Shown here: in pieces, positions 1 through 62,189 of the stretch
Layout of the letters: every line of letters begins with the position of its first letter
Numbering within the stretch: position 1 is the stretch's first letter
NCBI GenBank assembly: GCA_051294905.1
Contig: CM119382.1
Coordinates: forward strand, 16,678,001-16,742,000
Length of the DNA stretch: 64,000 nucleotides
Source of the DNA: Botryllus schlosseri
Taxonomy: Eukaryota
Direction: 5' to 3'
Translations under genes and position numbers: made by a program
The notes under the pieces: generated by a model
Seen by the model: the letters and a program-made list of their open reading frames with translations, nothing else
Told to the model about the DNA's origin: nothing
Databases searched by the model: none

Positions 1-629
1 AACTGACTAACTGCATTTTTCGTTCAAACTATTCACGTGCAAACATAATCCCTATTGTGTTTGATAAAGATTAATTAGGCTGTCCATCGGCTATATATAT
101 CCGAATCACCGTCTTTACGATCGTGATCATATCCGGTGCGGTAAATTGACATGCTGACCAAATCGGGCTCCCATTTCAGTTTTCCAAAAAAGACCCGTAT
201 TCGGCAAAAACATATCTCGTCTGTTATAATGAATATGGTATTCAGCGAGATGGCGTTTATGAATGAAATCACTGAACAATCAGGTACGATGAAATGTCGA
301 AGAAGTAATTCAAGATGAAAAAGTCAGCAACGATATTACTCGTTCCCAACACAAACGCAACATAAGAGGTTTAAATTTGTGGTAATTCAGATTCTGTCAA
401 AACGCATGGCGTAAGATATTGTCAATTGGAATGATAATTTAAGATTCCATCACAATGCCCATAGTTTAATTCATTGAAATTACATTGGATTATCAAAAGC
501 ATGGTCAGAGAAACTCAGTTAATCTTACAGAAAATAAAGGGATTGCCTCTTTTTAACAGTAAGCATTCGCTATTTAACAAATCGATATCGTTAATTCCAT
601 CTTATCGGACCGGCAACAACACAATAACA

Positions 630-881
630 ATGTACTCAGCAACGTGTACGTTCTGGATGATTCTCGGAACTCTTTCGTCGGCAGTATGTTATCACCAAGG
701 ATTCTTTACAAACTTCCATTCAAGTCACAGCACGGCGTTGTGCACTAAAAGATACATTAACTCACTTGCTGACTGTCCGGACGAACTAAAGTGCAAGGAT
801 GACACAAACTGCTCTTCAGACGATGTGTGCTGTCCAAACTCCTGCGGAACGGGCACCTGCATGCCCCCATACATTGTTGGA
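630..881 (+). CDS. WFIKKN: WFIKKN exon 1: signal peptide + WAP four-disulfide core
   Basis: ATG at 630 (the ORF-track start at 474 is a TTG); hydrophobic N-terminus MYSATCTFWMILGTLSSAVC; 8-Cys WAP pattern CTKRYINSLADCPDELKCKDDTNCSSDDVCCPNSCGTGTC; donor GTGAGT at 882, phase 0. Confidence 0.88.
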
Positions 882-3800: not shown

Positions 3801-6800
3801 CGTAGACGTAGATTTTCAACGTACAACAACATCATGGTATTGCGGGCATAAGGTCAGTTGTTTGACCACCACGTTCGCTCTGAAACCTAGATTGATTGAG
3901 TGCCTATGTATACAACACTTGCGATAAGTCGATTGCTGCAAAGAATTTTGACGCCACATGCCGGAAAAGAATTTAACGTGTTTACCGCCCGTCAAAGCTG
4001 GTTTTATTTTTCATCAACAGGATGAGAGATAAGGGCAGATTGGTATTTGCCAGAACATGCAACCTTCTTCTATTTTTAACGGTCGATTATGTTGGCAGTG
4101 GAAATAATAAGGGTCTCACGAAGTAGAACCATATGGTATGCGCCAAATTCACAGATATTTCTTTTTCTTTTTTTTTCTCGATTGGGTACGTTTCAATATA
4201 CCGTACCACGAAAATATGAGGTAAATTCTCGTTGATTTTACTAGGTCTAGTACGCGACTTCCAATACCAGATCTAGCTAAATTATTTCATCATCACTCCA
4301 TTAGCGACTATACGTTTTGGCCGAATGACCGCAACGTGAACTGCAATAGACAATTGTGGATGACTGGACATTCATCAAGCTCTAATTCGATGGCATTATT
4401 GCTAGAAACAATTCCGTTCCAAACAACGATCATTAATCACTGACAACTTGTTCGCGACATCGGCATGTAGACGAGAGCGCACGTTTCTTCTGGGCTTTTC
4501 CGGTGGCGCGGCATGATGGTGGCTCAAACCTGTAATTACGGATAAATGAAATTTGGCCTAATGATCTAAAGAATTCCCCATACTTCGGGATTTTGTGATC
4601 TGGGTAATAACAAGATAGCCTGTCGACAGCGCGACATGTTTGTGTTCTAGATTTTTACAACAGTTGTCCTTACAAACAGGTCAACATCAGGGATTTCTAG
4701 AACTCACTGGTCAACAAAATATCATTATACCTCGTGGTTTCTTATCAAGAAAAGCAGTCACCCATCGAAGTTAGTAGGTGCTGTTGTTATTTGTGGTATT
4801 CATGGTGTTTGTCGACGACTATGGTCATTTAAACCAGGCCAATTTTCTTCATTTTTATTCCACAGCTGCCGACTTGTAGCAACGCCCACATCTAGGCTTT
4901 TCATAAGACACCGCTTACACGGATAAAGGAGCCTAGATAAACCTATGCGGACCCGAACCCGCAACTCATTGGTGTTGGAGCTGTGAATTATACCACTACG
5001 CTATCCCGCCACTCAAGTTAGTAGGTGTGAAATGGGTGTGTCATAAAACCGTACACACCATACAGCATCTGAATAACTGATTGGTTGAACATAACTTGAA
5101 CACGGCTTTTAACAGCAAATTCATATTTATTGACTCGAAGAACTTTTCGCGTGCTTCTTATCAGGAGCAGACGCAATAATGAAAATTTATAAATAACATG
5201 AATGGAAATTCAACCATAGCAACAATGCAGCGTAGCAACAGTCAACTTAAAAAAAGTAGTAGCCTACGCGTACTACTCTACTATACTCTTGATAAGAGGC
5301 ACGCGAAAAGTTCTTCGAGTCAATAAATATGAATTTGCTGTTAAAAGCAGTGGCCATATAGTTAAATGGCGTAACAGCTCAGATGGTGCAGTGGTTGCCA
5401 TTGGAAGACAATGTTCTATAGTTCTATATAACCTTGAGATATCGTTGCAAAATTCATTCATTCATTCATTCCATACAAAATTCATCAATAATCCAAAATC
5501 TTCGTCGCGTAGCGAGCGTGGTTCTATAGCACTTTGGAGAGTGAGAGTCATTTGTATAGTAGACATGATTTAAAGCTTTCTGACCAGGATTAACTAAATA
5601 TCCTTGTTTTCGAGAGCTACAAGTTAATAAATTCTTTACCGCAATGAATGTAGTTAGCAATACACAAAATAGAACGTAACTAAATCGGGGAGTGTACGTT
5701 ACACTGGGCTCAAAACCGATAGGTATGAGCCCATACCTAACAGTTGTTATAAGAACCTTGATTTGATCCCGAAAATAGTGCAAACAATTATTAGATCGTT
5801 AATTAGTCGGATGGTCGAAATATTTCCAATAGTCAAGTCCAACCCCGAGAAAATCGACCTAACGTGGAACTCTACCCCGTCGTCTTTAGTGCAGGTCTTA
5901 AAATATGGAGGCGCCAAACCATGAAAATTTTCGAAAGGAAAACGGACAAAAATATCTTTGACCAGGACTACATCGACATGTAGCATTTTTACGGTATAGG
6001 CGATCATCATTATCAAAACATCCATTCCATTCCATTTATACACCACTCCGTGTTATAAATAGAGCCCGGCCGATTATCGGCTTGACGATAGTATTGACTC
6101 GATATCAGATCACACTTTATCGGTATCGGCCATTAGATGTGAAAAATATCGGCAATTTTTTGTGACGTCACAACATGGTGGTAGGAGTTAGAAAACTATA
6201 ATCCTTGACCGCTAGACTGGTAATATTTCTGTATTTCATACAGCTTACACTTTCAAGGTGCCCAGATGCAGCCTTTCTGGTTTATTTCATATTCGAGTAT
6301 GACAATGGCTGTAGAGCTGTTGGTGAAAATGCCTAGCAGCTCTGCAAATGCGTTTTTTGAGGTTGATTCCACCTTATTTGAATATCGGCTGAATATAGCG
6401 GTGTTATCGGTGAAAGTGGAAGATATCGGATTCATCGGTATCGGCCCAAAGACCCAATATCGGCCGGGCTCTAGTTATAACTGTTGAAACGACGAGAATT
6501 TCGCGGATTCCAACCATTCCAAATCTTATACGTCGACTACATCCAGCCGGTGTTGGGATGACTCGAGTCACCTTTTTCGTATGACTTGACTTGACTCGAG
6601 TCACTTTGCTAAAATGACTTGACTTGACTTGACTCGGCGCATCAAAAATGTGGATTGACTCGTGACTCGGAGCAAAATTCACGAGTCAATTTCAAGTCAT
6701 CAAGTAATCGGTGTCGATAAAAATCCCTGTATCTTGCATATGGTCGGACTGTTCGCGAAATCCTGGTGTGACCCGTGAGAGTGACCAATCTTTCAGTGAT

Positions 6801-9800
6801 CGTGCGCTTTACTGAAACTCCATCGTTCTCTCACACATAAATTGACCGCAAACGGAGTGATCGAAACTTACAGATTACGTGGTCGTAAACTAATACAGTA
6901 AAGTAATTTAATAGCAAAATCTATATTTCTATTCTCTGTTCTTTCCTTAACCAAACCTCTTGTTTTATTGAAATTGAATTCAAATATAGTTGATATAGTC
7001 CTCAACCATTAGCGTAGGCTTGAATTGTATCATATCAATTTGTAAATGGATAATGTATTGCATATTGTCAATTCGTTTCTCTATTCTGGCTGGTAACTAT
7101 AAACTTGGGCTGTGCAATTACTTACGTAGTTTAGCAGTTCTACGTATATGTGAGCGATACAGCGCCTTATTGCGATTATATTTAACTTATATTCGCTCAT
7201 TGGTTCAGAATCAATGACCACTCAATCTGTATTTTAGACAGCTAGCAAAATGCAATGACGTAATGATGCCTCATACTTCAAAAAGGCAACTTGACTTGAA
7301 TTGTGACTTGACTCGTGACTTGACTTGACTCGACTCGACTTGACTCGAGTCACCTCCAAAAATCGAGTGACTTGACTTGACTCGAGTCACTTTCGAAAAT
7401 CGACTGACTTGACTTGACTCGAGTCAAATTTTGCAATTACTCGAGATGACTCGTGACTCGGAGGTAGTGACTTGATCCCAACACTGTTTCCAGCGCTAGT
7501 CATCTCAAGGCTCATAGTAGATGTTTTTTCTCAAAGTATTTACACAATTATGACATAATTATACAAGTTTTGATTCTTTTTTATAACATTTGTATCAAAC
7601 ACTGTTTAAAACATTCCTGCTTGAATGCAACCATAATTTCAACTATGTAGACCTGCTGAGCTTATTGATTCCCTCATAAGAGACATTGAAGTGTATTCAA
7701 AAACTTCTTTTCACTTAACAAAATTAAGTATTTCACTAATAAAACTATTACTTGACGTAGCAATAAAATTAGTCAAAACTACCCAAGTGCTCCGGAAGAG
7801 AAGTGATATATGCATATATATGCGAGCTCGATAATGGGCGGTTGAATGGAACAAGTTTGAGAACCACTGGTACAAATAATACGAATTATGGAACAGTGGT
7901 ATAACCGAAATATTTTCCAGGATTTACCGGACGATCAGCGCCGGTGTGAAAACGTTTCTTGCACTGGTCAAGGGAGACAATGCGTCGTTTACAATGAAAG
8001 AACTTGGTGCATTTGTGAACGGAGCTGCCAGGACGTGTCGACGAATGACGAACTTGTGTGCGATCAAAATGGCACAACATACCTATCTATGTGTCTCCTG
8101 AACAAGCGGGCTTGCGAAACAAGGCGTGAATTAATCCCAACAAGATGTCCGTACCTCGAAGGGAACGCCGTTGATAATGCAATCGATAGTGCAGAACCAT
8201 ACTTCACTACCATAGCACATGGACAAGCGGCCGTCGAGGGGAGTAACGTCCGATTGATCTGTAGGCCAAACGGGAACCCTATACCTATGATCCACTGGCA
8301 AACGCCAAAAGGAAGGTTGTTGGAAGTGGGACAAACCAGTCACATGGATGATGGCAGGATTTCCGTGGACGGTACCGGTACATTAATCATAACTGGGGTC
8401 ACCCTGGGCGACGACGGGGAATACTTTTGTATAGCTACAAGTAGACTGGGGGAAGCAATAAGAAGATATCGACTACAAGTCCAAGGTGAACTTTTCTTAG
8501 TAGCAGCACCCATCCAGAGCGCGTTGTTTCGATGCCTAATGGTTGTCCGCAAATATTTGCTAACTAACTAATATACATATTCTAAGAATCAGCCCCATAA
8601 AGCACTGCCTGGTTCTTGTATTTGACTGACTCAGGTTTGTGCGCTTTTTCACTGTGTTATGTCTCACCCGCTTACTGATCACTCTAAAAAGTTAGACAAT
8701 CTTTATGATTAAAGAAGTTCAGTCCGACTGCGAAACATCAGGGTATCCCAAAAAACCTACTATCGAACATTACATTGGCGAGACGTACGGTCTATGGATA
8801 CGGCAATCAGTCACGCGTCAATTGCTGTACCAGCCGTTCTTATGATCATAAATTGACAAATTCCGCCGGGACGTACGTCTCGGTAGAACTGATTCTCCAT
8901 GTATTCTACGTTTATGAGTTGATGCTAGATCAGGGGTTCTCAAACGGTGAGCCATGGCCAGCTGGTGAGCCACAAGAGCATTTTGAGGTGGGCCACAAAG
9001 CTATGTGGAAAATTTCTAAGTCGATTACCACGCATCGAACAGGATTATGGCTCTAAGATAAGAGGTGGGCCTCAGCACATTTTCAAACAGAAAAATGGGC
9101 CACGGCCAAGAAAGGGCTTAGAACCCCTGTGTTAGATGCTACCTTAGTGTCCTATATTCGACAGCCCGACAATGGTGTGGACACAAGCAAATCCCACGGC
9201 TCACTGCGATTGGGTTACGTCATTTTTTCCAGCAGCGCAAACCGCAAGCGTATTGGCTATTGGTGAGCAATCGATTGAGCATTCACACTCTCATTTTACT
9301 GCGCACTTGCTACTGAGCTGTGCCATATTATTCCAGACGACACATTTACGTCACAATGTAATTCTCCGTTACAATGCGAAATTCAAGGCTGATTTTGGTG
9401 GGGACCACGAGCAGAATAAAATTTATATTTTCGCAGTCAGTACCGCGGTAGCATTCAATTGATATCAATTTTATCGATTTTGGTGCTCGGCAAGCCAGTC
9501 TATATAATGCCGTAAATTGCCTTGGTCAAATGGAAAGAAAGACGTAACCCAATCGCATTGAGCCGTGAGATTTGCTTGTATCCACACAATTGTAGTACAC
9601 TATGATTCTACACTGCATGCATAGAGAGACAGATTGCTTATCAGGATCACCCCTCCTACAGAATCCAGGAATACCGTTCGCCGCTCTTCTACAGTATTAC
9701 AAGTTGATTGCAACAATTATCCTGCGAGGCAAGCACAGCGATGTCGCCGAAAACGTACGCTGCCGATTAAATGGATGTGGGTGTATGACAAGGGCTCGAA

Positions 9801-10703
9801 CACTTGCAACACGTCCTTTTTCCGAGATTGCTACGCCGTCACAAATAAAGTTAGTCTAGTGCGTTAATGTATAGTCCATGCCGTGAATGTATATACATCA
9901 ATGTTTATATTTCTGTAGTTTGCAACGAAGAGCAAATGCGAAAATGCTTGTGTCAAAGATGTATGCGCGTTACCGGCTGAGAGGGGGAGCTGCAATGATT
10001 TTCGCGTGCGGACAGCATACAATGCGGCTCTTGGACACTGCGTAGTACGATCTCGACAATATTCCAGGGTTATCTAATGAAATTAAACACATTCATTTTT
10101 ATTCAGCCGTTTGTGTACGGAGGATGTGAAGGGAATCTCAACAACTTCAGAGACATGGCCCAGTGTAATCTTACATGCGGCAAAGGCCCGCACCGCGGCA
10201 GTGTTCCAACACCTCTGTGTAAAAATTGCAAACCCAACGAAGGAAGAGCAGTTTGCAGCGCTGACTTCGTGATAGTTGCGAACATCAAGCGACTGCCACG
10301 CAAAGCGAACGATGATGACAGATTCCCAATCATGCACGTTGAAATAACGGAAATATTAGCTGACTGGTCGATCAACTTAAACTTGAGTCGGAGAAATTTA
10401 CTGAACCTGCAGGAAGCACGGATGGACATCAAGGTAGAGCTTGATCAAGAGTGCCCATGCCCCAAAATGTACGACCTTCGGAGCGGTGGCAACCGTGGCA
10501 AATTCTCGCGTAGGCGACTATCCGGAAGATCAAGTGACGTTTCAGCGATTATAGCGGGGAAAGAGGTGGATGGATTCCCGACTTTAACAGAGGACGGGCT
10601 CGCACAGAAAACAACATCCAGTGGCTACAAGCGAGTTAGCGAGTCCATAATACAGAGCGAATTCTTGTGCAACGCACTTGCGAGCATGAATCGGCAGGGT
10701 TGA
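630..10703 (+). CDS. WFIKKN: WFIKKN-family secreted multidomain protein (WAP, follistatin/Kazal, Ig, 2x Kunitz, NTR); spliced model join(630..881,7921..8485,9662..9849,9919..10044,10107..10703), 575 aa
   Basis: Five GT-AG bounded exons with compatible phases (0,1,0,0) sum to 1728 nt = 576 codons including the stop. Domain order signal peptide-WAP-FS/Kazal-Ig-Kunitz-Kunitz-NTR is the diagnostic WFIKKN architecture. Confidence 0.93.
4942..5012 (-). mobile_element. tRNA-derived SINE head or tRNA pseudogene
   Basis: Minus strand reads A-box TAGCGTAGTGG and B-box-like GGTTCGGGTCC at tRNA-like spacing; no complete cloverleaf acceptor stem. Confidence 0.45.
5105..5348. repeat. Long inverted repeat / MITE-like foldback
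   Basis: Arms 5105-5167 and 5286-5348 are reverse complements at 61 of 63 positions, with a 118-nt spacer. Confidence 0.8.
6060..6473. mobile_element. hAT-type MITE (ATCGG/CCGAT-rich ends), 414 bp
   Basis: 15-bp perfect TIR TAGAGCCCGGCCGAT; flanking 8-mers GTTATAAA/GTTATAAC. Confidence 0.85.
6548..7486. mobile_element. hAT-type non-autonomous element, GACTC/GACTT-repeat family, 939 bp
   Basis: Ends CGGTGTTGGGAT...ATCCCAACACTG; degenerate TSD CATCCAGC/TTTCCAGC; same family in opposite orientation at 57109-58962. Confidence 0.85.
7921..8485 (+). CDS. WFIKKN: WFIKKN exon 2: follistatin/Kazal + Ig I-set domain
   Basis: Acceptor ttttccag at 7920; CENVSC..CVV..CICERSC..VCDQNGTTYLSMCLLNKRAC (FS/Kazal); Ig motifs LICRPNGNPIPMIHW and DDGEYFCIA; donor GT at 8486, phase 1. 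Confidence 0.92.
8931..9129. mobile_element. Short hAT (Charlie-like) MITE, 199 bp
   Basis: Ends CAGGGGTTCT...AGAACCCCTG; flanks TGCTAGAT/TGTTAGAT; related to the ends of the element at 48691-49914 and the fragment at 18969-19100. Confidence 0.8.
9145..9602. repeat. Dispersed repeat (foldback-type element family), partial copy
   Basis: Homologous by eye to 20340-20730 and 21875-22290 (shared ccagacg..ctccgttacaatgc..aggctg..cagaataaaat..cagtacc..ggtagc). Confidence 0.75.
9662..9849 (+). CDS. WFIKKN: WFIKKN exon 3: most of divergent Kunitz domain 1
   Basis: Acceptor cctcctacag (phase 1 fits exon 2); CNNYPARQAQRCRRKRTLPIKWMWVYDKGSNTCNTSFFRDCYAVTNK; donor GTTAGT at 9850. Confidence 0.8.
9919..10044 (+). 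CDS. WFIKKN: WFIKKN exon 4: end of Kunitz 1, start of Kunitz 2 (absent from the ORF track)
   Basis: Acceptor tttctgtag; FATKSKCENACVKDVCALPAERGSCNDFRVRTAYNAALGHCV; donor GTACGA at 10045 restores canonical C-x-x-F spacing with the next exon. Confidence 0.85.
10107..10703 (+). CDS. WFIKKN: WFIKKN exon 5: end of Kunitz 2 + NTR/C345C domain, stop
   Basis: Acceptor tttttattcag; PFVYGGCEGNLNNF..C...C, then NTR motifs CKNCK..CSADFVIVA and CPCP; TGA at 10701-10703. Confidence 0.92.
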   Translation, partial: PFVYGGCEGNLNNFRDMAQCNLTCGKGPHRGSVPTPLCKNCKPNEGRAVCSADFVIVANIKRLPRKANDDDRFPIMHVEITEILADWSINLNLSRRNLLNLQEARMDIKVELDQECPCPKMYDLRSGGNRGKFSRRRLSGRSSDVSAIIAGKEVDGFPTLTEDGLAQKTTSSGYKRVSESIIQSEFLCNALASMNRQG

Positions 10704-38543: not shown

Positions 38544-40877
38544 TTTGAAGTGGAGCGGTGTCTGAATATTTAGTTTCTTTTTATTTTAGCTCTTAGCGGT
38601 GTCTGGGATCCTATTTTTCCTTTCTTTTGTAGCATTCGTACTATGCCGGTGATCATGTTTCTTTTGCAGTATTTTCACGTTCAGTATTTCACGTTATAAT
38701 TTAGTCGATCAGCCACTGTTAGATTGCGGTATCGTATCGCACGATTACGTTTTGAAATACAGCCGTCCATTCTTTACTCATTACTGCGTTGTGCTGGTGT
38801 GAAGTTGGCTCAGAAGTGGGCTGCCTTAGTATGCCTGAGTCATAGCGTACGACTGCTAATGCGCTGAGCGAATAGTTCAAAGTAGACCATAAAACGTGTC
38901 GGCATATAAACTTCGTCGTTTAGTTTTGGGCGAAGTCCGGGAGGCATTTTTCATGTTGGTGGCCATCGTGAAATTTTTGCGCATTAGGACAGCTTCTTTA
39001 GTCGTATTGGAGCTGGTGTCCTACGTTCGAGGTTCATTTTGGTAGACCGAACGTTTCCAGAGTCCGAAATACGGCGGAAACGCAAAGCCGCCTGTTAACT
39101 GTGGCCGTGGCGAACGGGATTTCTGAGTTTACCAATCCTTGTACTGACATTATAGCGTTCGTAGCGAAGCAATCGTCTATGTAGGCAACAAAAGAACAAA
39201 GATGTGTTGCAAGGGAAGGATATTTATAACTGATTTCAGAAGTCTGTCTGTCTATATACGCAAGACTGAGCAGCGGTAACAAATGACGGATATTTACTTT
39301 TTATTTGAACCCATGACGTATAGCATTACGTAATACTCCACCTGCTGATCTGAGCTTTGTTTGGAGATAGGCCGACGCCATACTCAAACAGCTGTGGTTA
39401 CGCACAGGAGGACTTCCGGGAACACTGAACAATCCTGCATTGTGGCAATTGCGGGAGGCAGAGAGAGCTCCTGCGTTTCCGTGATTGATCACGGCGTCAT
39501 AACATCCACGGTCGGACGATCTATGACTGCGTGGCTAGTCACATCGTAATGAAATGTTACAACACCTCCATTCTACATCAGCACTCGTAATTTGAAACAA
39601 AATTCCAGATAACCCTGACTTGGAACCATATGTTCTCCATTAGCTCGTCGTACATTGCGCTTTCAGTTGAAAGAGTATCCCGTTGCCAAAACATAACGAT
39701 CGGTACAATGTTGATTTGGGATCGCTGAATAGCGGTAATCATTTTTCGACTCAGGCGCCTAGTCTCTCCGTATAATGAATGGGAGATGCTATTATCGCAG
39801 AGGTGACTGGATACTCTCAGTGTCGACATTCTTGCAGGAGTACGAATTCTGTGCATGTTAGCATTAGCAAACATCTGACATGCGTAATCCATATTGCATC
39901 ATATGCCGCGTGAATCACTCGTTGCCATGTAGCTGCAAGCGTTGGCGGAAAAAGTGTTCGGCATCTATAGTAACTACCGAACTGAATATATATAAGTTTT
40001 GTGGTAGCGGAAGTTGTTGACTGTATTTTTATTTCGCCGATATGGCTTTGTCCTAGCAGATTACAAGATCTTTTGGGATTATATTCAGCGATTCCGTCCC
40101 AGATCATGGGCCAATAGACTGCTATCTTCGTCAAGGGTAGGGAACCGCAGACGCAGACTATATGCAAGGCTGAGAACCAATGGTATACAGCAGATATTGC
40201 GGTTAAACTGTTAGTACTGGTGAGCCATGTGTCGTTGAAAGTATTGAATACAGCGCATTTTTCTCCTAGTATGCTTTCGTGCCGTTAACATGCAATCTAT
40301 TGGCAGCGATGTATTTTTACGCCTGGGTCGATCTATCGAAATCAGGTAGACGTCGCGTCACCAACCTCGTGGCCTACATATTATGTAACGTAACCATCAC
40401 AACTTGCACAGTATGCATGCAAGCAATTATATATTCGATGTATATTATACAGAAGCCATCACTAAGACGATGTACTGTAAAACAACTGGTCAGATCGATT
40501 TGAACTTCAATTGCGTTGAAATCGTTTACGATTTGCTATTTGTCACAACTTCAAACATAGCATAGATTTCCACAATTCGCTGGTTTCCGTGGAATAAGTT
40601 GTTTACGGTAAACAAAACTACGGTATTGATCAAAATTAAATTTCCAGCGCTTCACAGGTCTTGTAGCTTGTCGCTTGCCAACAGACTGTATGTTAATCAG
40701 AGTTGATTCTGATCGATTAAATATCACTTGATCTATTGCCGCAACTGCAAGGATACGGTATCATTACCAACAACTAAACATATACAGAGTTTCAGATTTT
40801 GAAATCAACGAGGTTGATCGTGTCCTTTCCAATGCTGTTGTTTTGTTCCCATTTGCAGGGTATGGTCTTGCATAGAG

Positions 40878-41381
40878 ATGTGTTTAGCCGCGACGCAAAT
40901 ATCAACAAATTACGTCCGAAATGTTCCACTCGCAACCCTGCGTCCGACAGACATCAGATTCAGCAAGAACACGATAAAAGACATCTTCACGAAGTCATTC
41001 CAAGACGAAGAAACCCATTCCCATCGAAAGATACACGACGTAATCGATGATATCAGGAGCGGCATTATAAATCCCCACACGCTGCCACCCTTGAAAACGT
41101 TCGTGCAACGGGACCAGTGGAGGACTAAGAATAATCGACGATTGTATATGCTGCGGGTTCTCGAAGTTGAGGGCTACATCGATTACGTTCAAGTACAGGT
41201 CATACGGCGGTACCAGCGACTCGATTTGCGAGATGACGGCAGGACGATTCGATTCGAGGGAGGCAAGCATCGCCCCCTACGACATCGACATAAGTTCTGG
41301 TGTTTTCCTCGTCCGGAGCATCTCGGATATGTGATGTTAATAGTTTTAATATCAGCGCTCATGTACGCATCGATGGTATAA
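40878..41381 (+). CDS. Uncharacterized 167-aa protein with a putative ParB/sulfiredoxin-like domain and C-terminal hydrophobic tail
   Basis: Uninterrupted ATG-TAA ORF, GC-richer than its flanks, preceded by a strong acceptor ttttgttcccatttgcag (40858). Motifs LRPTDIRFSKNTI, G-x(7)-P, W-x-T-x-NNRRLYMLRVLE resemble the IRFSQ...DNRRL ParB-like family I recall from invertebrates and bacterial toxin C-termini. Ends in the 19-aa hydrophobic stretch LGYVMLIVLISALMYASMV. Confidence 0.72.
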   Translation: MCLAATQISTNYVRNVPLATLRPTDIRFSKNTIKDIFTKSFQDEETHSHRKIHDVIDDIRSGIINPHTLPPLKTFVQRDQWRTKNNRRLYMLRVLEVEGYIDYVQVQVIRRYQRLDLRDDGRTIRFEGGKHRPLRHRHKFWCFPRPEHLGYVMLIVLISALMYASMV

Positions 41382-41389
41382 CTATAGAA

Positions 41390-42812
41390 CAGCGGTTCTC
41401 AACCGGGGGTCCGCGGACCCCTAGGGGTCCGCGAAGCAATTTCAGGGGGTCCGCGAGACCTCTAAATTTTCAAAAAGGTTGATAACCTAATTTTTATTAT
41501 ATTTTTTAATTTGAGAAAGCAAGAGGCAGTTTCGCACTACAGCTGATAAAACCTCATGACTCATATCATCATAATAATCGTCTGGCATGGACTATCGTAG
41601 TGTGGAAATTCATTTTCATTGCCAGTTTTCCAATAACCTGCTGATACAAACATATTGCTGTTTATAGACGTTTTATTGGGGTTTGTGGAAAAAGTTAAGA
41701 TATGGGAATAGTAACATCAATCAGGGTGACTTCGTAATGTCTGCGAAACCTTCTCGATTTGAAGTTGACAGTCTCATCAAATTAGTGAACGAACAGTCGT
41801 TTGAAATAAAAATTTCCGAAGTATTTCCATAATTTGTCCCAATGCAGGGAACAGCTTCTTGGGGGTACAGAACTTTATTATACAATTGAATAGTTTATTC
41901 ATATTGAAATGAACCCGAATATTTTCGGCTGACACTCGTCATAAATCGGACAATGATATACCTGCTCTTAAAGCTCGGCTATCAGATTTTGCGCATTCTT
42001 ATTGCGGATCCCCTATCGACAAGGCTGATTTTTTGATGAACAAGGAGTGTTTCGTTGCTATCAAGGCATTACGCTCCGACCCTGAAATTCATATCACCAG
42101 TTATATTGATATGCAGCCTTGTCTTGTTAATGTTCCATTGTTCATGGTCGAAAATGTCTGCTCGTAAATATATAGGCTATGTAAACCAGAACAGAACAAG
42201 TCGTTTCATGACAGTCTTTCTCAAGTTGGAAAACTTGGATGCGTTCTTTGGAGCATAAAATTTGTCTATTCTTTTAGATTAGGATTTCACTTTGACGGTG
42301 GAAACCTCTGCGGGCCGATCAAAATGCCGTCGTGGGCCGAATCCGGCCAGCGGTCCGTATGTTGCCCGTCCCTGCGCTAGATGCTGGATGTGATATGTTC
42401 ATAAAATATGTGTTTCTTCATTTTGGTGCAATAAATGTTGCGATCACACCAAAAGTATGGTCGAAAGCGTTATGAGTTAATATTGCATTAGCCTCCACCT
42501 ATCTTTGCTGAAATGGTTTTCTGCACTCCTCGTTCGGATTTTCAAGACACGACCCCGCACTTCAATAAATACAGTAGGAAAATTAGCTTTGAAATAATAA
42601 AAGTCCACCAATTTCTACATAAATAGTATGATGTTATCTTCAATAAAAATCATTATTTTGCTGTTTATCACAAGCCTACAGCTCATATTTGCACAAGACA
42701 GATGAAGGTTGCACCATATTAGAGCTAAAATTGAAATAAAACTTGAGGGGGTCCGCGAGGGTTCGTGAAGGTCAGAAGGGGTCCGCGAAGCCAAAAAGGT
42801 TGAGAACCACTG
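41390..42812. mobile_element. Composite hAT element, copy 2, 1423 bp
   Basis: Same TIRs as 14817; perfect TSD CTATAGAA; begins 8 nt after the stop codon at 41381. Confidence 0.92.
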
Positions 42813-42969
42813 CTATAGAATAATGATGAAGAATCATAGCTGACAGACTATTTGCATTATCTTTACTGCGGATGTTTTAATGTACTTACCACCGTTGGCG
42901 TTAGCAGAATTGTTTTGTCACATCTTTACTGCATGGTTTTCCGTCTCCAGCGGTTATTATACGTTGTAT

Positions 42970-54900: not shown

Positions 54901-57900
54901 AGGATTGGTAGCATTCTGGTTGCAGTTTGTGATATGACGATAAAGAGAGGCGCTAATTTTTCACTATCCTAGAGGGGGGCGTGTCTATAAAAGTTTGAGA
55001 ACCACTGGCCTAGGCGGTGTCTTAATGGAAGCCTGTATAGAAGTGGGCCGTGCCACAAGTTGGCAGGTACGGAATAAAAAATGAAGAATATCGGCGTGGT
55101 GTATAAATGACCACAGTAGTCGACAAACGCCATGGATGCTACCAACGAGCTCGAGTTTAAATATGGAGACTAGTACAAATTTTATATCGACTTTGCCAAA
55201 GTTGAAAACAGACTGAATCCGAAACCTGCTTTTACTTTGCCAAGGTCGAAAACAGACTGAATCCGAAACCTGATTTTATTACTTCGCCTATACGTGTCTT
55301 CACTCAGATATTATCAGTATAGGGTGCACCCTAGTCGGTTAGTTGCTAAAACGCCTGGAAAATTCATTGTTTATCAATCAAAACCACCAATGATCTCAAC
55401 CACGGATCTCGTTTCAATTTAGCCGATGCCCAACCGCAAGTCTACTCCTCTTCTGAAATGCGGCCATTGCAAATTCGCTCGATATTGCAACAGGGACTGC
55501 CAGAAGTCGGCCTGGGAGGCGCACAAACCAGAGTGCGCTGCGATCAAGAGGGTGTTCCCCAATGTAGCTACCGACCAGACTCGCCTGGCAGCTAGACTGT
55601 TCTGGAAGAAAAATCGCAATCAAAAGAATAACACTGCCGAAGATCTGCCGATTTCAGTTGAGGTACAATATAGATTAGGGTTACCATATTTTTGTGAAGC
55701 CAATTCCGGACACTATTTAGCGCCCACCAGCGGATTTTAAAATGAGTCAGGAGAAATTGACCGTCATTATGACGTCACACTGAGAAAGCTTTACCTATCG
55801 ACCATAGTCTTGGGCTACCATATTTTTGTGGTCCAATTTCCGCACACTCTTTGGCGCCTACTAGCGGGTTTTATAATGAGATATGAACACATTGTCAGTC
55901 AATATGATGTCACACCAGCAAATGGAGCAGGAATGGAGTGGAACATAAGTCTTGAATTGGGCCATCTAGAATGTGAGCTCTGGTCATTGCTACTTAGTGG
56001 GGTCTGCAATAGATTTCTTCAGGGCTGGATGAAATCGTCTGTCGGGGCCGTGTCGGGCCTGTTGGGATTGTGTTTGACAGGCCTGCTATAGGCATACTGT
56101 TAGGTCGGTGCGGGTGCGGCTATCTGGTGTTGTGTCCGAAACAACTTTTTGCAGCCCCCTTCCGCCCAAAAAAATCACTGATCTTGAGCCCACCATAGGG
56201 TAATCGATGTAGCTTCTTGGGCACTTACTATGCATCTGGTTGTCAAATTTTAAGAATGAATTCTGTCAATAATATTTAGTCTTCCGTATATTAGGCTACT
56301 ATAAAATGCACCAGCAGATTGCACATCCGGTGATTTCCAACCTTTTATGGTCGCCCCCTCATTTCCAACTTGAAAATGCTCCGTAGTGGCCCAGCTCACA
56401 ATTCGATAAGCTGGTTACTAAAAAAATTCAGCTTGTCCATATGCTTACTCACGGCCTATTTTAAAAGCTGATTACGTCCAAAATCTTCACGATACCCAGA
56501 TAAAGGCAAACGACCCCAAGATTTGGAACCACTGTCTGTGGCTGAGGCACCCAATCGGTCTTAACTATAACTCTCGGAATATACCGTTAGCTTATAATTG
56601 CGATTACAATTAGACTTATTACAGTAAATGATGGAGATTTATATTTATTTTTGATTGCATTTTTTGCAAGGGCGGTGCCCGGTCCCCATAATAACATCAA
56701 TATACGTTGCATTCACTCGCGCGCAGCGTGAAGAAAAAATTCGAATAGCATAAATCTGCTTCAAAATAATATTGTTTATGTCGATTTACGAAAAACTTTT
56801 GAGCCTACTTCAAGCCTTCAAATTCCGGACATTTAGGCATATTTTAGAAATTCCTCCCGGACGCAGTTTTTACAGTGAAATTGCGGACATGTCCGGGAAA
56901 TTCCGGGCGTATGGCAACCCTAATATAGATAGGGTTGCATTTAAAACAAATGGTTGTTTAAAACACTTTTTTTAAAACATGTTTTAAGCAGTGTATTAAA
57001 CAAGGGCCTTTTTTTTTAAATGTGTTTTTTAACGTTGTAAAATTATGCCATAATTGTATAAATAATTTCCAATAAACATGTTGTATAAGCAATGCATTGG
57101 GCATACGGCAGTGTTCGGATCAAGTCACTACCTTCGAGTCACGAGTCATTTCGAGTCATTGCACATTTTGACTCGAGTCAAGTCAAGTCAATCGATTTTC
57201 AAAGGTGACTCGAGTCAAGTTAAGTCACTCGATTTTTGGAGGTGACTCGAGTCAAGTCGAGTCAAGTCAAGTCACGAGTCAAGTCACAATTCAAGTCAAG
57301 TTGCCTTTTCGAAGTATGAGGCATGATAACGTCATTGCATTTTGCTAGCTGTCTAAAATACAGATTGAGTGGTCATTGATTTTGAACCGATGAACGAATA
57401 TAGAGGTAAATATACACGTAAGAAAGCGCTCTATTACTCACCAGTGTTGGGATCAAGTCACTACCTTCGAGTCACGAGTCATTTCAAGTCATTGCACATT
57501 TTGACTCGAGTCAAGTCAAGTCAATCGATTTTCACAGGTGACTCGAGTCAAGTCAAGTCACTCGATTTTTGGAGGTGACTCGGGTCAAGTCGAGTCAAGT
57601 CAAGTCACGAGTCAAGTCACATTTCAAGTCAGGTTGCCTTTTCGATGTAGCCTTGAATGAGGCATGATTACGTCATTGCAATTTGCTAGGTGTCTGAAAT
57701 ACAGTTTGAGTGGTCATTGATGATGAACGAATAAAGAGTTAAATATATACGCAAGAAGGCGCTTTATCGCTCACATATACGTAGAACTGTTACACTAGGT
57801 AATTGCATAGCCTCAGTTTATAGTAACCAGTCAAAATAGAGAATAGAGAAACGAATTGATAAGATGTAATACGTTACCCATTTACAAATAGATATGATAC

Positions 57901-60900
57901 CATTCGAACCTGCGCCAATGGTTGAGGACTATATAAACTATATTCGACTTCAATTTTAATAAAACAAGCGGTTTGGTTAAGGTAAGAACAGAGAACAGAA
58001 ATAGACATTTTGGTATTCTATTACTTTACCACTAGAGTTACGACAACGTCAGCTTATAAGCTTCGATCACTTCGTTTGCGGTCAATTTATTTGTGAGAGA
58101 ACAGTCAAGGCTTGGTGAAACGCACGGTCATTGAACGATTGGTCGCTCTCGCGGGTTACACAAGACACCGATTACTTGATGACTTGAAATTGACTCGCGA
58201 ATTTTGCTCCGAGTCACGAGTCAATCCACATTTCTGATACGCCGAGTCAAGTCAAGTCAAGTCATTTTAGCAAAGTGACTCGAGTCAAGTCAAGTCATGC
58301 GAAAAAGGTGACTCGAGTCTGACTCGAGTCGAGTCATGACTCGAGTCATCCCAACACTGTCACTCACATATACGTAGAACTGCTAAACCTCAGTTTATAG
58401 TTACCAGCCAAGATGGAGAATAGATACGAATTGATAAGATGCAATACATTACGCACTTACAAATCGATACGATACAATTCGAGCCTGCGCCAATGGTTGA
58501 GGACTATATAAAATATATTCCAATTCAGTTTCAAGAAAACAAGAGGTTTGGTTAAGGTAAAAACAGAGAACAGAAAGTACTTTACAATACTAGTTTACGA
58601 CAACGTGAGCTGTAAGCTTCGATCACTTCGTTTGCGGTCAATTAATTTGTGAGAAACAATGGAGGCTCAGTCAAACGCACGATCATTAAATGATTGGTCG
58701 CTCAGACGGGTTATACCAGCGTTTCGCGAACAATTCGAACATATGCAAGATACAGTTATGTTGATCGACAACGATTACTTGATGACTTGAAATTGACTCG
58801 TGGATTTTGCTCCGAGTCACGAGTCAATCCACATTTCTGATAGGCCGATTCAAGTCAAGTCAAGTCATTTTAGCAAAGTGACTCGAGTCAAGTCAAGTCA
58901 TACAAAAAAGGTGACTCGAGTCTGACTCGAGTCAAGTCATGACTCGAGTCATCCCAACACTGGCATACGGACAATTACCACCCGATATAGCCGACGTATA
59001 ATACGATATGGGATCGTTGGAACCCTCAAAATAGTCGGTTCAACAGCTATAGTATGTAGATATTTCGTGAAAGGAGCTATATTTACCCTATATTTTCAAT
59101 TGTCAATGTCAGTCTAGTAGGGAACCACTGGTAAGAGTTCGATTTACATTCAATCTACCTGAATATACGAACTTTTGCTTGGGCAATCCTGGGCATTGCG
59201 GGAATCAGCTTTCTCAGACATATTAACCGAACATGTTTTGTGGACGATATGCCCACTTTTTGCTGGTCTTCAACCTCTGTTGAACACTGAGATTAAAATC
59301 GTCGATTCAGGAGTTGGAATCGCATATCAGCAAGAGGACAGAAGAAGAGAAATCGCAACTAGACGAGAAGGTTTATAGCTTCGGTGATTACGTCACCTAC
59401 GACGACATGCCGAGCGATGACGAAACTATATATCAATGGTTTGGTGCTGTTGACTGCAATGCAATCAGGTCCTTTGATTTCTAATTCATTATGATGAATT
59501 AGGATAACTATATATAATACAATATTCGTTTGTGAACGTAGCATCATTTCTATTACATTGTTTTGGCGTGTCATATCCGTCCTCATCTATTCTTATCTTC
59601 CCTCATATATGCTTTCGATATGAAGCCACGAAGTACATTTCAGCTCAATCAGTTCTAGCCTAATACCACGAAAGTGGCGTTGAGAGTATGACGGTTTCAT
59701 TTATAGCTTGTATGTATTAGATACATTGTGCATATGGCGAATCCGTGGAACCAGTTCATTTTGACCGGTTTTAATTACTTTCAGTTACCTATTATACTCC
59801 GTTTTTTTTTCAGTTTGAATGATCCAAGGGCGGTTGCCGTGGTCGGTGTCGGAATATTTCTCGAAGTGGCATTGATGAACCATGATTGCAATCCGAACTG
59901 TGTCGCTGTGAATAACGGCACCAAAGTTGAGGTGGGCCGCAATGTACAGAAGTAGGCTATTCTTTTGAATTTGCTGTCATTTAGTCTTATCCTATATCGA
60001 ATTAGAGCAGCAATTGGTTGCCACAACTTTCGATGGCATAGTCTATTGGTCCCACACAAATGCCCAATTAATGGCTATCATTGTCGTCTAATAGTGTTCG
60101 GATACTGATAGTGTCTTCGAGTTGATATATCGCGCTACTTTAATAACACAAATACCTATCCATGCAATGGCATCCCAGGCACACCGTTTCCATAGATTGT
60201 TAAGCACGTTATCAGTCAAATGACGACGTTGAATAATATGGATCTATGCAGGGGAAATTGGCCGTTACGTTTGATATCAACGAGTAGTGTTACACGTTTT
60301 CCAATAGGTGAGAGCAATAAGAGCAATCGAGGAATCGGAGGAGCTTTGTCTTAGTTACATCAACCCCATTGACACGCATCCAGGGAGACAGGAGAGCCTT
60401 ACGAAGCAATACTACTTTACCTGCAAGTGCAATGAATGCGAAAACGGCAAGTATAGCATGAATAAGATATGTTTACTTAACTCTCACGCAAAACCTATGT
60501 AGGTTGGTCTCGAAATAATATAGAGTCTGATTTCATAGTAATGCTGGGGAATGGTTTTGGCCGATGACTTTTAACATGGATCTTCTATGATTAGTGGTTT
60601 GTCTCTAAATTTGCGAATAAGGTAGTAACACCAATGGGATGCGTGAGATGCGTATCACAAGGAATGACCATATTTGATTGCAGTTCTCCACTAACGACAT
60701 AGTTAGCTTGTAGTAAACAAGATATTGTTACACGCCGTACATGGTACAGCTACCATCTTTTAAAATATATTCTTTACGCTAACCTACGTTGAATGTTTTA
60801 GGCAGTGAGCAGGAAGATTTAAAAGCAGCTCTGTTGAATGACAAAATCCTGAAAGAGAAGCCGGAAAGCGAAGATTACATCGTGAAAATGACTCGAGACG

Positions 60901-61347
60901 CACTCGTAAGGATGGAGAAAATGAAGTCTGTACGTATACCATGCTTGTAGCCTTGCAACAAAATAGAGATAGGGTACTCGACCGTCCACTGTATAATGTT
61001 CAAACTAGATCAATAAGAATCTTTTATCATAGTTGAGGTTGCTTTCTGTTTAGATTCAAAACTTCGAACGACTGTACAACCAAGCTGTCGGAACATTAAA
61101 ACAGCAGGACAGTGTTCTCGCGGATACGCACGTTTTGAAAATCGCGGTCTTAAGTAATTGAGGCTATAGCTGAATGTCCTCTGAGGGACCACAATGACTT
61201 AAAATATTCGTTTCAGACCACCTTGTGGAAGTATGTTCGTATCTAAGAAGGCCGTCAGATGCTTGCGAGTATGCACAAAGGATATCCGATGCGTACGAGA
61301 AGATTCTACCTGCAATACACCCTATTTTGGGAATGTACCTAATGCGA
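45734..61347 (+). CDS. SMYD1: SMYD1-like SET and MYND domain lysine methyltransferase, 3'-partial; join(45734..45901,55423..55662,59311..59468,59814..59931,60308..60450,60806..60929,61054..61153,61217..61347), 394 codons
   Basis: Split SET (GKGRGL..., VGVGIF..ALMNHDCNPNC, LSYI), MYND (CHHC..CGHC..YCNRDCQKSAWEAHKPEC), post-SET KQYYFTCKCNEC and a TPR-like CTD (VLADTH, LGMYLMR). NHDC, D-x-R-x4-VGVGIF and KQYYF match vertebrate SMYD1 as I recall it rather than SMYD2/3. No terminal exon found before 64000. Confidence 0.88.
45910..46045. mobile_element. Left-end fragment of a GTAATC/GATTAC-motif MITE
   Basis: CAGACGTGGG followed by many GTAATC/GATTAC motifs; no matching right end found. It explains the spurious tail of the 45734..46093 ORF. 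Confidence 0.55.
46207..47362. mobile_element. Non-autonomous DNA transposon carrying a telomere-like array, 1156 bp
   Basis: 37-bp perfect TIR GGTTGCCAGTAAACTCGCCCCAAAGTAAATTCGGCCC; perfect 8-bp TSD AGCTTTGC; subterminal GGCCGAAT repeats. Confidence 0.92.
46751..47203 (+). repeat. Interstitial telomere-like array (TTAGGG/TTAGG/TTAGGA; dominant 17-mer TTAGGG-TTAGG-TTAGGA)
   Basis: About 450 bp read directly from the sequence. Confidence 0.95.
48691..49914. mobile_element. hAT (Charlie-like) non-autonomous element, 1224 bp, nested in an older GTTACGGCCCTG-ended element
   Basis: Ends CAGGGGTTCTCA...TGAGAACCCCTG; perfect TSD CACTAAAC. The host family right end GCTGACGAAGTGCTGTTACGGCCCTG is at about 50050-50073, with similar ends at about 48440 and 52180. 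Confidence 0.85.
52935..54915 (-). mobile_element. 5'-truncated LINE remnant (L2/CR1/Crack-like ORF2 C-terminus + 3' UTR), interrupted by the 53118-54614 hAT element
   Basis: Minus-strand ORF 54651..54914 EIRTIHRAIPLRTKLSPYYRKHRILQVDDLYRFEVSKVIHK..LLPSF resembles the conserved post-RT tail of L2/Crack-type ORF2; the 3' end has AATAAA then (CT)n. Confidence 0.65.
53118..54614. mobile_element. Composite hAT element, copy 3, 1497 bp
   Basis: Same TIRs; perfect TSD CTCTAAAC; minus strand about 54046-53860 reads KFYAPKNGSKFSNLTKTVMKRLVLFGFTYI, like a decayed hAT dimerization domain. Confidence 0.92.
55423..55662 (+). CDS. SMYD1: SMYD1 exon 2 (MYND finger)
   Basis: tttcaatttag|...|GTACAA; 240 nt. 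Confidence 0.9.
55676..56922. mobile_element. hAT-type non-autonomous element, 1247 bp
   Basis: TIR TAGGGTTACCATA / TAGGGTTGCCATA; perfect TSD ATATAGAT; inserted 13 nt after the SMYD1 exon 2 boundary; its left end is partly duplicated at about 55805-55880. Confidence 0.88.
57109..58962. mobile_element. GACTC-family hAT element (outer copy) containing a second copy of itself
   Basis: Ends CAGTGTTCGGAT...ATCCCAACACTG; perfect TSD GCATACGG. Confidence 0.92.
57442..58359. mobile_element. GACTC-family hAT element (inner copy), 918 bp
   Basis: Ends CAGTGTTGGGAT...ATCCCAACACTG; TSD TTACTCAC/TCACTCAC; removing it restores the outer copy's internal sequence. Confidence 0.92.
59311..59468 (+). CDS. 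SMYD1: SMYD1 exon 3 (SET-I: ELESHISKRTEEEK...WFGAVDCNAI)
   Basis: gattcag acceptor; AG|GTCCTT donor (weak), phase 2 matches exon 4. Confidence 0.85.
59814..59931 (+). CDS. SMYD1: SMYD1 exon 4 (SET core NHDCNPNC)
   Basis: tttttttttcag acceptor; donor GTGGGC. Confidence 0.9.
60308..60450 (+). CDS. SMYD1: SMYD1 exon 5 (SET-C, post-SET)
   Basis: ttttccaatag acceptor; ends at 60450 (GTATAG) or 60446 (GC-AG donor GCAAGT). Confidence 0.88.
60806..60929 (+). CDS. SMYD1: SMYD1 exon 6 (CTD start)
   Basis: Starts at 60806 or 60802; donor GTACGT at 60930 (alternative in-frame GTAAGG at 60906). Confidence 0.8.
61054..61153 (+). CDS. SMYD1: SMYD1 exon 7 (IQNFERLYNQAVGTLKQQDSVLADTHVLKIAVL)
   Basis: ctttctgtttag|...|GTAATT, phase 1. 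Confidence 0.85.
61217..61347 (+). CDS. SMYD1: SMYD1 exon 8 (HLVEVCSYL...HPILGMYLMR)
   Basis: ttcgtttcag|...|GTAAGT, after a 63-nt intron. Confidence 0.87.
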
Positions 61348-62189
61348 GTAAGTATGTTATAGAAACGATTGTCGAATTCGCTGCCGTTGGTTTTCTTCAT
61401 ACGGATGAGCATTATGTGAGCACTGAGCACTTTTAAGCAGGGCAAGTCAAAGTAGTCAGCGTTTCTACTCTAGTAGAAGCAGAAGTAGCGATTTCAAATA
61501 CATTTTTATGACAATTGCACTCGTTAAATTGGTTCAATCTTGACTCAAACAGATTCAAAGTGCAGAAAGTAAGTAGTTTGCCTAACATACTGTTCAAGTG
61601 GAAGTGGAAGTATAGTTTAAGAATGTATCCACCTGAATAAATAGCACAACTTGCGAGTGCGAGTGCGACCGTGCGCGATTGCATTGGAAGCGGTGAAGTC
61701 ATTGCGGAGTATATGGATTTCCAAATTCCTGCTTTTCACAACGGATGATCTCAATATTTTAATGACCCGTTTTTCCTCACGCTACCCCGGCCGAACAGTG
61801 CATACCACAAAAGAGACTTGAAAAGCAGCATTATTATTATGTAAAATACACAGACGTTTATCAATTGTAATGGTGTCGACAACACCTCGATTCCTTTAGC
61901 GTCCGTAAAATGTATGAGCTATTGAATGAGGTCAACCGGCAGAGAGTTTCAGAACTCTCGTCGGCCGAGTCCCTGAAAACAAACAAAGGAAAATTTGGCG
62001 AGGGCTGAGGTGTTTGACGACTTTTAAATACTCAATCATTATCCTTCCCGCGCTAACAAATCAATTTATTTTCATTATCAATAATAATTATTAATATTTA
62101 AAATAATGTTATTGTGCTTATAACAACGAAGATATTTTGCACAACAAACCAATTAATTTCAGCAACAACACTAGCGAACCAAAGCGACC

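Follow-up and report, generated by a model that had tools for sequence, protein, structure and literature searches.

Tox-ParBL1 is a computationally defined toxin domain related to ParB, with NGK_2271 of Neisseria gonorrhoeae as its type member, and it was described from HINT, RHS and FilH toxins as well as, in stand-alone form, from many eukaryotes including metazoa (Zhang, de Souza, Anantharaman, Iyer, Aravind 2012, Biol Direct 7:18, PMC3482391). Its signature consists of a conserved N-terminal Ser/Thr that is absent from classical ParB and of a [NT][RT][RT] motif, mostly N-R-R, which is the equivalent of DGHHR in ParB, and ParBL1 was treated as an acquisition independent of that of sulfiredoxin (PMC3482391). 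According to the prediction made in 2012, bacterial polymorphic toxins were the source from which Tox-ParBL1 reached many eukaryotes. Recent large surveys of the ParB fold used the Pfam profile PF02195, which misses Tox-ParBL1, and in the literature that was searched no member of the family, bacterial or eukaryotic, has been studied by experiment. Here we describe a Tox-ParBL1 gene of Botryllus schlosseri that lies on contig CM119382.1 (C12) of the 495 Mb genome assembly GCA_051294905.1, in a stretch of 64,000 nucleotides (C12:16,678,001-16,742,000) that is called the window in the following. Its open reading frame (ORF) of 167 codons probably constitutes the one coding exon of a functional gene for a tail-anchored Tox-ParBL1 protein with a domain that faces the cytosol.

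ToxB, an ATPase toxin of CdiA proteins that has the ParB-CTPase fold, binds adenosine triphosphate (ATP) with its GNHR motif, is specific for this nucleotide, has a turnover of about 300 ATP per hour and is deprived of both binding and hydrolysis by the R108A exchange (bioRxiv 10.64898/2026.05.05.722872). It has in common with the window protein and its family the small stand-alone ParB-fold domain without a helix-turn-helix (HTH), the occurrence as a toxin tip and a phosphate-binding motif of the x-N-x-R type, and by analogy the window protein might plausibly bind ATP and hydrolyse it slowly, as ToxB does. However, ToxB was found via PF02195 and belongs to the classical ParB_N branch, whereas this profile gave no match at E<=1 in any of 81 family members (the window protein and 80 relatives). 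Its motif reads GNHR instead of NNRR, and it passes from one bacterium to another and has iToxB as its neutralising partner. Sulfiredoxin (Srx), which acts in peroxiredoxin repair, is, like the window protein, a eukaryotic single domain of about 100 residues with the ParB/Srx fold and is found among the best structural matches, but the identity amounts to only 12-13%, the window protein has no Pfam match, and Srx is soluble and not tail-anchored. In addition, the catalytic Cys of the Srx motif GCHR corresponds to Asn86 in NNRR, as inferred from PMC3482391 and the aligned ranges. The cytidine triphosphate (CTP)-dependent DNA clamps ParB, Noc and KorB share with the window protein the fold of their N-terminal nucleotide-binding domain (Z 5.4-6.0), whereas the HTH, the dimerisation domain and the ParA-binding motif are all missing from the window protein, which is also undetected by PF02195, and the Gly position of the ParB motif GxxR is Asn or Asp in its family.

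Fold, family membership and C-terminal helix

The ORF contains LRPTDIRFSKNTI, HSHRKIHDVIDDIRSG, P-x-L and W-x-T-x-NNRRLYMLRVLE, followed by a basic stretch and a hydrophobic end of 19 residues. A direct check of the sequence thereby confirmed the 167-residue ORF and the motifs quoted in an earlier note, which had been made from the letters of the window. As the window holds seven ORFs of at least 130 residues, the length of this one is unremarkable, and the case rests on homology and conservation. Ser29, which stands in IRFS, and Asn86-Arg87-Arg88 correspond to the Tox-ParBL1 signature, and judged from this signature, the architecture and the phyletic pattern, the window protein is best assigned to Tox-ParBL1. 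The IRFSQ...DNRRL family of invertebrates and bacteria, to which the earlier note had attributed the protein, is real and by its signature identical with Tox-ParBL1 (PMC3482391).

A structural model was calculated with AlphaFold2 on an alignment of the 81 members (A1), with a predicted local distance difference test (pLDDT) of 84.4 and a predicted template modelling score (pTM) of 0.79. In a Foldseek search of the PDB, all of the 50 matches listed have the ParB/Srx fold, among them ParB-CDP, Noc, sulfiredoxin, PadC, Atu1540, SbnI, the serine kinase SerK and KorB, with weak E-values (from 3e-3) and probabilities of up to 1.00. Superposition with VIA-align gave a Z score of 7.1 for Atu1540 (root-mean-square deviation (rmsd) 2.5, 88 residues), 6.5 for the sulfiredoxin of Arabidopsis (rmsd 3.2 over 83 residues), 6.0 for human Srx and 5.8 for ParB-CDP. 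An exhaustive scan of 48,161 representative PDB chains, which is independent of Foldseek, resulted in Z>=2 for 14 chains only. The top 10 of these all belong to the ParB/Srx superfamily, with Z up to 6.9, and unrelated chains appear from Z 2.4. Taken singly, the Z scores are middling, but the exclusivity of the ParB/Srx matches makes the modelled fold convincing, and all of these comparisons bear out the ParB/Srx fold that had been proposed from the sequence. Pfam showed no family for the window protein at E<=10 and no relevant family for the window protein, 10 homologues and the 81 alignment members, the PF02195 profile had no matches in the Botryllus genome, and a profile search of the PDB sequences returned only the J-chain at E 0.17, which is a chance match. 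Among the Swiss-Prot structures, only distant matches to ParB and Noc were found and no characterised close relative.

Kinship with the tips of polymorphic toxins had likewise been proposed, and it is supported by bacterial proteins that combine the domain with a HINT module. A phmmer search of 1.84 billion representative proteins detected P0038 (E 7.2e-6), in which a PT-HINT domain (134-255) is followed by a domain of the window type (259-334). The locus of its relative P0112 has, in this order, a 1677-residue RHS/Tox-REase-9 toxin, a small ORF, a HINT-ParBL1 cassette and an overlapping ORF of 138 residues, and the window protein aligns with the bacterial PT-HINT tips across the whole domain at 31% identity. 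A homologue search with the tip of P0038 yielded three close relatives only, and scans of genome contigs with this tip or with alignment A3 yielded no relatives. The window protein resembles the Tox-ParBL1 toxins, a family that is known computationally only, in its predicted ParB fold, its N-terminal Ser/Thr and its residues N86-R87-R88. Unlike them, it is eukaryotic, predicted to be intracellular and tail-anchored, has no delivery module or recognisable immunity partner, and has Gln30, FTT and Arg127 replaced. On a bacterial metagenome contig (L021, 8001-9499), the stop of an orphan PT-HINT/ParBL1 cassette overlaps a 138-residue ORF without Pfam match. This ORF is a candidate for a new immunity protein of ParBL1 tips, and a search of the Botryllus genome with the bacterial 138-residue ORF as query found no homologue.

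After the domain of 130 residues, the window protein continues only with a basic linker and a transmembrane (TM) helix. Residues 149-167 have a mean Kyte-Doolittle hydrophobicity of 2.18 with zero residues beyond them, the AlphaFold model has a helix over residues 146-166, and the N-terminus, MCLAATQISTNYVRNVP, is not hydrophobic. The protein thus has a single TM helix near its C-terminus and no N-terminal signal peptide, as is characteristic of tail-anchored proteins. The tails of the close relatives are divergent in sequence, with a hydrophobicity of 2.15-2.51 and 0-3 residues beyond, so that their hydrophobic character is conserved, and together with the helix of the model this substantiates the tail anchor that the earlier note had claimed. 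It is not a special addition to this protein, however, as 22 of the 104 homologue representatives, including Ciona LOC100185009, have a TM segment no more than 25 residues away from the C-terminus. Another five of the 104 end in a CaaX-like motif (e.g. CTIL or CVIL), and so does the paralogue L007 of the same genome. Because TM tails and CaaX-like ends both recur across the family, membrane tethering looks like a recurring theme in its eukaryotic members. The proteins with a CaaX-like ending instead of a TM tail are L007, P0002, P0037, P0060 and P0080, and P0002 of Styela possesses two tandem domains with a CaaX-like motif after each. These endings suggest that prenylation may serve as an alternative membrane anchor.

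Relatives, selection and divergent residues

Full-length relatives of the window protein are P0001 (92%, 167 residues), P0114 (73%, 169 residues) and P0115 (71%, 167 residues). The contig that encodes P0114 (L023) is collinear with the window, and in both the downstream gene encodes a zf-MYND protein, with exons at 55446-61355 (+) in the window and at 8212-11565 in L023. Between the window and L023, the coding DNA alone still aligns. The distance from the ParBL1 gene to the zf-MYND gene is about 1.2 kb in L023 and 14 kb in the window, where it is apparently filled with repeats. Substitutions were analysed for the pair of window 40878-41378 and L023 6543-7049 (P0114) only. The proportion of nonsynonymous differences (pN) is 0.15 overall, with 0.106 in the domain and 0.33 in the tail, whereas the proportion of synonymous differences (pS) is 0.89 and thus saturated. 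A low pN at saturated synonymous sites indicates strong purifying selection. The synonymous difference of 0.89 is above the 0.75 expected at saturation, which may point to codon or base-composition preferences that run in opposite directions in the two species.

In a phylogenetic tree, the window protein and its relatives (four sequences) form a clade with 100% support in the Shimodaira-Hasegawa-like approximate likelihood ratio test (SH-aLRT), with a stem of 1.26 substitutions per site and short internal branches. This lineage groups loosely with two Ciona proteins (87% SH-aLRT), apart from the paralogues on C3, and the bacterial tips form a separate clade with 99% support. By tree and substitution pattern, the window gene appears to be an old, slowly evolving lineage that is distinct from the cluster of about 33 copies on C3. 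The Logan sample SRR25569784 holds both P0001 (92%) and P0115 (71%), and the window genome has one copy. This reflects either an extra paralogue in the sampled organism or a sample of two species.

The wider family is large. The phmmer search gave 104 matches at E<=1e-3, the best of them other than an orthologue at 1.5e-17, and those homologues that bear a name belong to the ascidians Styela clava and Ciona intestinalis and to the bivalve Mya arenaria and are all uncharacterised. Nearest among the named relatives, at about 30-37% identity, are LOC100185009 and LOC113475298 of Ciona intestinalis and LOC144428234 of Styela clava. Of these, LOC100185009 is tail-anchored like the window protein and LOC113475298 has FSK and NNRRLYMFRVLE in common with it, whereas the Styela protein differs by two tandem domains and a CaaX-like end rather than a TM tail. 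Clusters of the same fold in AlphaFold-DB are mostly unnamed eukaryotic proteins, some of them fused to C2H2, MYND or alpha-kinase domains, besides one bacterial RHS protein, and a feature search of the ESM Atlas returned unnamed clusters only, mainly molluscan ones. In the Botryllus genome itself, a six-frame search with the window protein as query revealed 26 loci besides its own, at 27-40% identity, and the search with a family profile returned 42 matches (about 33 on C3, three on C2, two on C15 and, alone on C12, the window gene), which amounts to about 40 Tox-ParBL1 loci. With these loci, full-length relatives at 71-92% and one syntenic orthologue, the designation as an orphan in the earlier note has to be abandoned. 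The loci on C3 lie between 24.9 and 29.2 Mb (L002-L014, L017-L020), are divergent and 22-40% identical to the window gene, and form a clade separate from the window lineage. Several of these copies have internal stops, and the cluster looks like a lineage-specific expansion.

The residues at the signature positions were counted in the columns of alignment A1. Position 29 is Ser in 49 and Thr in 18 of the 81 members, and position 30 is Gln in 65 and Lys, as in the window protein, in four. Asn86, Arg87 and Arg88 are conserved in 79, 77 and 69 members, respectively, and position 85 is Asp in 55 and Asn in 24. The change from FSQ to FSK (Q30K), which the earlier note had taken as an altered signature, is therefore real, whereas the change from DNRR to NNRR is not an alteration, as Asn at this position is ordinary and also found in the bacterial tips. 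Further changes were found near the C-terminus of the domain, where Thr116 (60/81) is replaced by Asp, Thr117 (55/81) by Leu and Arg127 (63/81) by Glu, with Gly121 (78/81) being retained. The strand motif in which they occur recurs without change, or nearly so, in P0001, P0114 and P0115, and Q30K, T116D, T117L and R127E are kept by all four full-length relatives. On the alignment, Q30K, the loss of FTT and R127E thus appear as real, lineage-fixed changes, and they suggest an altered substrate or chemistry in comparison to the rest of the family.

These changes could also mean that the protein is a conserved pseudoenzyme, in which the fold was kept as a binding module at a membrane, for example as adaptor, decoy or regulator, and catalysis was lost. 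The four exchanges affect positions that are conserved in 55-65 of the 81 members and are maintained in all four relatives, and a change of function would agree with the long stem and the strong conservation after it. ParB variants with the exchanges Q52A and E93A, which appear in the list of PDB matches as entry titles only, have a hydrolysis defect. However, the core residues Ser29, Asn86, Arg87 and Arg88 are all kept, and the Ciona protein P0021 likewise has Lys at the position of the family Gln. We therefore regard the loss of catalysis as unlikely, if worth serious consideration, and prefer a functional tail-anchored Tox-ParBL1 protein.

Leader, transcription and surroundings

Upstream of the ATG, the reading frame is open to 40818 without an earlier ATG, and a tract with a CAG/G boundary at 40858 is located 19 nucleotides 5' of the start codon (Table 1). 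The strong splice acceptor of the earlier note is thus matched by a good-looking polypyrimidine tract and CAG, but no junction reads were found in the sampled RNA. A T-rich tract is present at the orthologous locus L023 as well, where it ends with AG about 35 nucleotides before the ATG, and two codons 5' of this ATG there is an in-frame TAG. This stop argues that the ATG is the true start and that any upstream exon is non-coding. A Ciona-type trans-splicing was considered as well, and the Ciona spliced leader, an approximate query, gave a single match with one mismatch in the genome.

Directly 3' of the stop codon, a non-autonomous hAT-type transposon is inserted in the 3' untranslated region (UTR), so that the native 3' UTR is split off. 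Its terminal repeats are of the form CAG(C/T)GGTTCTCAACC, and an 8-bp target-site duplication, CTATAGAA, at 41382-41389 and 42813-42820 extends the total span to 41382..42820. As the duplication starts after the TAA, the reading frame is intact. The element occurs in thousands of copies: a genome scan listed 5085 first-look candidates, and the copies, 90-99% identical, all start near window position 41390, whereas the coding sequence and 580 bp upstream of it are single-copy in the genome. One hAT copy on C4 is 99% identical, which indicates that this element family was recently active.

RNA was examined in four bulk runs, each sampled at 6-13%. About 6-7 reads in one run and a few in a second cover 40840-41540, with the depth beginning in the bin 40840-40956, and zero reads in any of the four sampled runs fall on 38851-40839. 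No splice junction at the locus reached the reporting threshold in these runs. Transcription of the ORF is thus weakly supported: the RNA data that the earlier note had called for provided a few reads over the ORF, but no junction to a 5' exon.

The very low RNA depth without a junction, the hAT element right after the stop and the internal stops in several of the C3 copies would be in line with a non-functional relic or a chance ORF from which no protein is made. We consider this very improbable, as the ORF is intact, has the same start and end in the relatives at 71-92%, shows a pN of 0.15 against saturated synonymous sites between flanks that no longer align, and has a frame that is untouched by the transposon. 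That the ORF is transposon-borne, stems from contaminating bacteria or was acquired very recently by horizontal transfer could be suspected from the occurrence of the domain in bacterial toxins and from the adjoining high-copy transposon, but we dismiss this almost completely, as the repeats begin only at about 41390, the nearest relatives are animal proteins that include the Ciona grouping, the bacterial tips stand apart, and the zf-MYND synteny is kept in another assembly. The coding sequence itself is single-copy. On these grounds the transposon-borne, contaminant and pseudogene readings were all rejected.

The upstream neighbour of the gene ends near 38.5-38.85 kb, so that the ParBL1 gene is intergenic and not intronic. 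At the beginning of the window, long ORFs (474-10703, +) with WAP, Kazal, Ig I-set and Kunitz domains in this order look like exons of a WFIKKN-like multi-inhibitor gene.

Table 1. Features of the Tox-ParBL1 gene and of the adjoining transposon, in window coordinates
Feature	Position	Strand	Description
Coding sequence	40878..41381	+	ATG 40878 to TAA 41379-41381; 167 residues and stop; single coding exon
Candidate 3' splice (or trans-splice) acceptor, non-coding 5' leader	40828..40858	+	Polypyrimidine tract ending CAG
Tox-ParBL1 domain, ParB/sulfiredoxin fold	40929..41267 (residues ~18-130)	+	AlphaFold2 model and structure searches
Ser29-Lys30	40962..40967	+	Family Ser/Thr kept; Lys replaces family Gln
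Asn85-Asn86-Arg87-Arg88 ([NT][RT][RT])	41130..41141	+	Equivalent to phosphate-binding GxxR/DGHHR of ParB (PMC3482391)
Divergent C-terminal strand motif RLDLRDDGRTIRFE	41220..41258	+	Family consensus KFTTxNDGxxVxVR
Predicted C-terminal TM helix, tail anchor	41322..41378 (residues 149-167)	+	Hydrophobicity and AlphaFold helix; basic stretch before
Non-autonomous hAT-type DNA transposon	41390-42812 (1423 bp)		Terminal inverted repeats CAGCGGTTCTCAACC, CAGTGGTTCTCAACC

Proposed role and meaning for the family

Several points weigh against a functional, nucleotide-handling membrane protein. Structural Z scores of 5-7 are middling by the own scale of the tool, and the equivalences to the residues of the ParB motifs come from the literature and the aligned ranges and not from a residue-level superposition. 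The RNA support is very thin, with a few reads in two of four runs and no junction, and in this individual the 3' end of the mRNA may be compromised by the 1.4-kb hAT insertion directly after the stop. Gln30, Thr116, Thr117 and Arg127 are replaced in spite of their good conservation in the family, so that a catalytic inactivity is possible. Furthermore, nucleotide binding, catalysis and membrane insertion are reported for no ParBL1 protein in the searched literature. With these points included, we still think that the gene probably is functional, and the interpretation of the earlier note is, as a whole, partly supported.

By analogy to the triphosphate-binding motifs GERR of ParB, GCHR of sulfiredoxin and GNHR of ToxB, Asn-Arg-Arg and Ser29 of the window protein would form the triphosphate-binding site for a magnesium-bound nucleoside triphosphate (Mg-NTP). 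The C-terminal helix would be inserted post-translationally into an organelle membrane, which may be that of the endoplasmic reticulum or the mitochondrial outer membrane. At the cytosolic face of this membrane, the predicted domain would bind a nucleotide and perhaps hydrolyse it or transfer phosphate from it. A more far-reaching and tentative proposal is that an ancient bacterial toxin domain was domesticated in the Botryllus lineage into a conserved, tail-anchored enzyme or nucleotide switch of the organelle surface, with a site rewired by Gln to Lys, the loss of FTT and Arg127 to Glu, and with a new substrate. This is possible, but less likely than not. A role in defence or conflict, as considered in the earlier note, is suggested for the window protein solely by the toxin ancestry and, by analogy, the C3 expansion, whereas the slow evolution of the window lineage argues for a fixed cellular role instead.

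With the window protein, a tail-anchored and well-conserved member is added to a family that is known but unexplored by experiment. The locus of this protein is a tractable representative of the family, as it is single-copy and small, comprises one coding exon, is under strong purifying selection and encodes a clear membrane anchor. A quarter of the eukaryotic members have tail anchors or CaaX-like ends, which points to action at membranes. If the domestication proposed above is true, the gene would serve a housekeeping or innate-immune function at a membrane, unlike the C3 cluster with its fast evolution, and a role could be assigned to a eukaryotic ParBL1 protein for the first time. The contrast between the window gene and the C3 cluster of about 33 copies could reveal the function of a domesticated toxin domain in animal cells.

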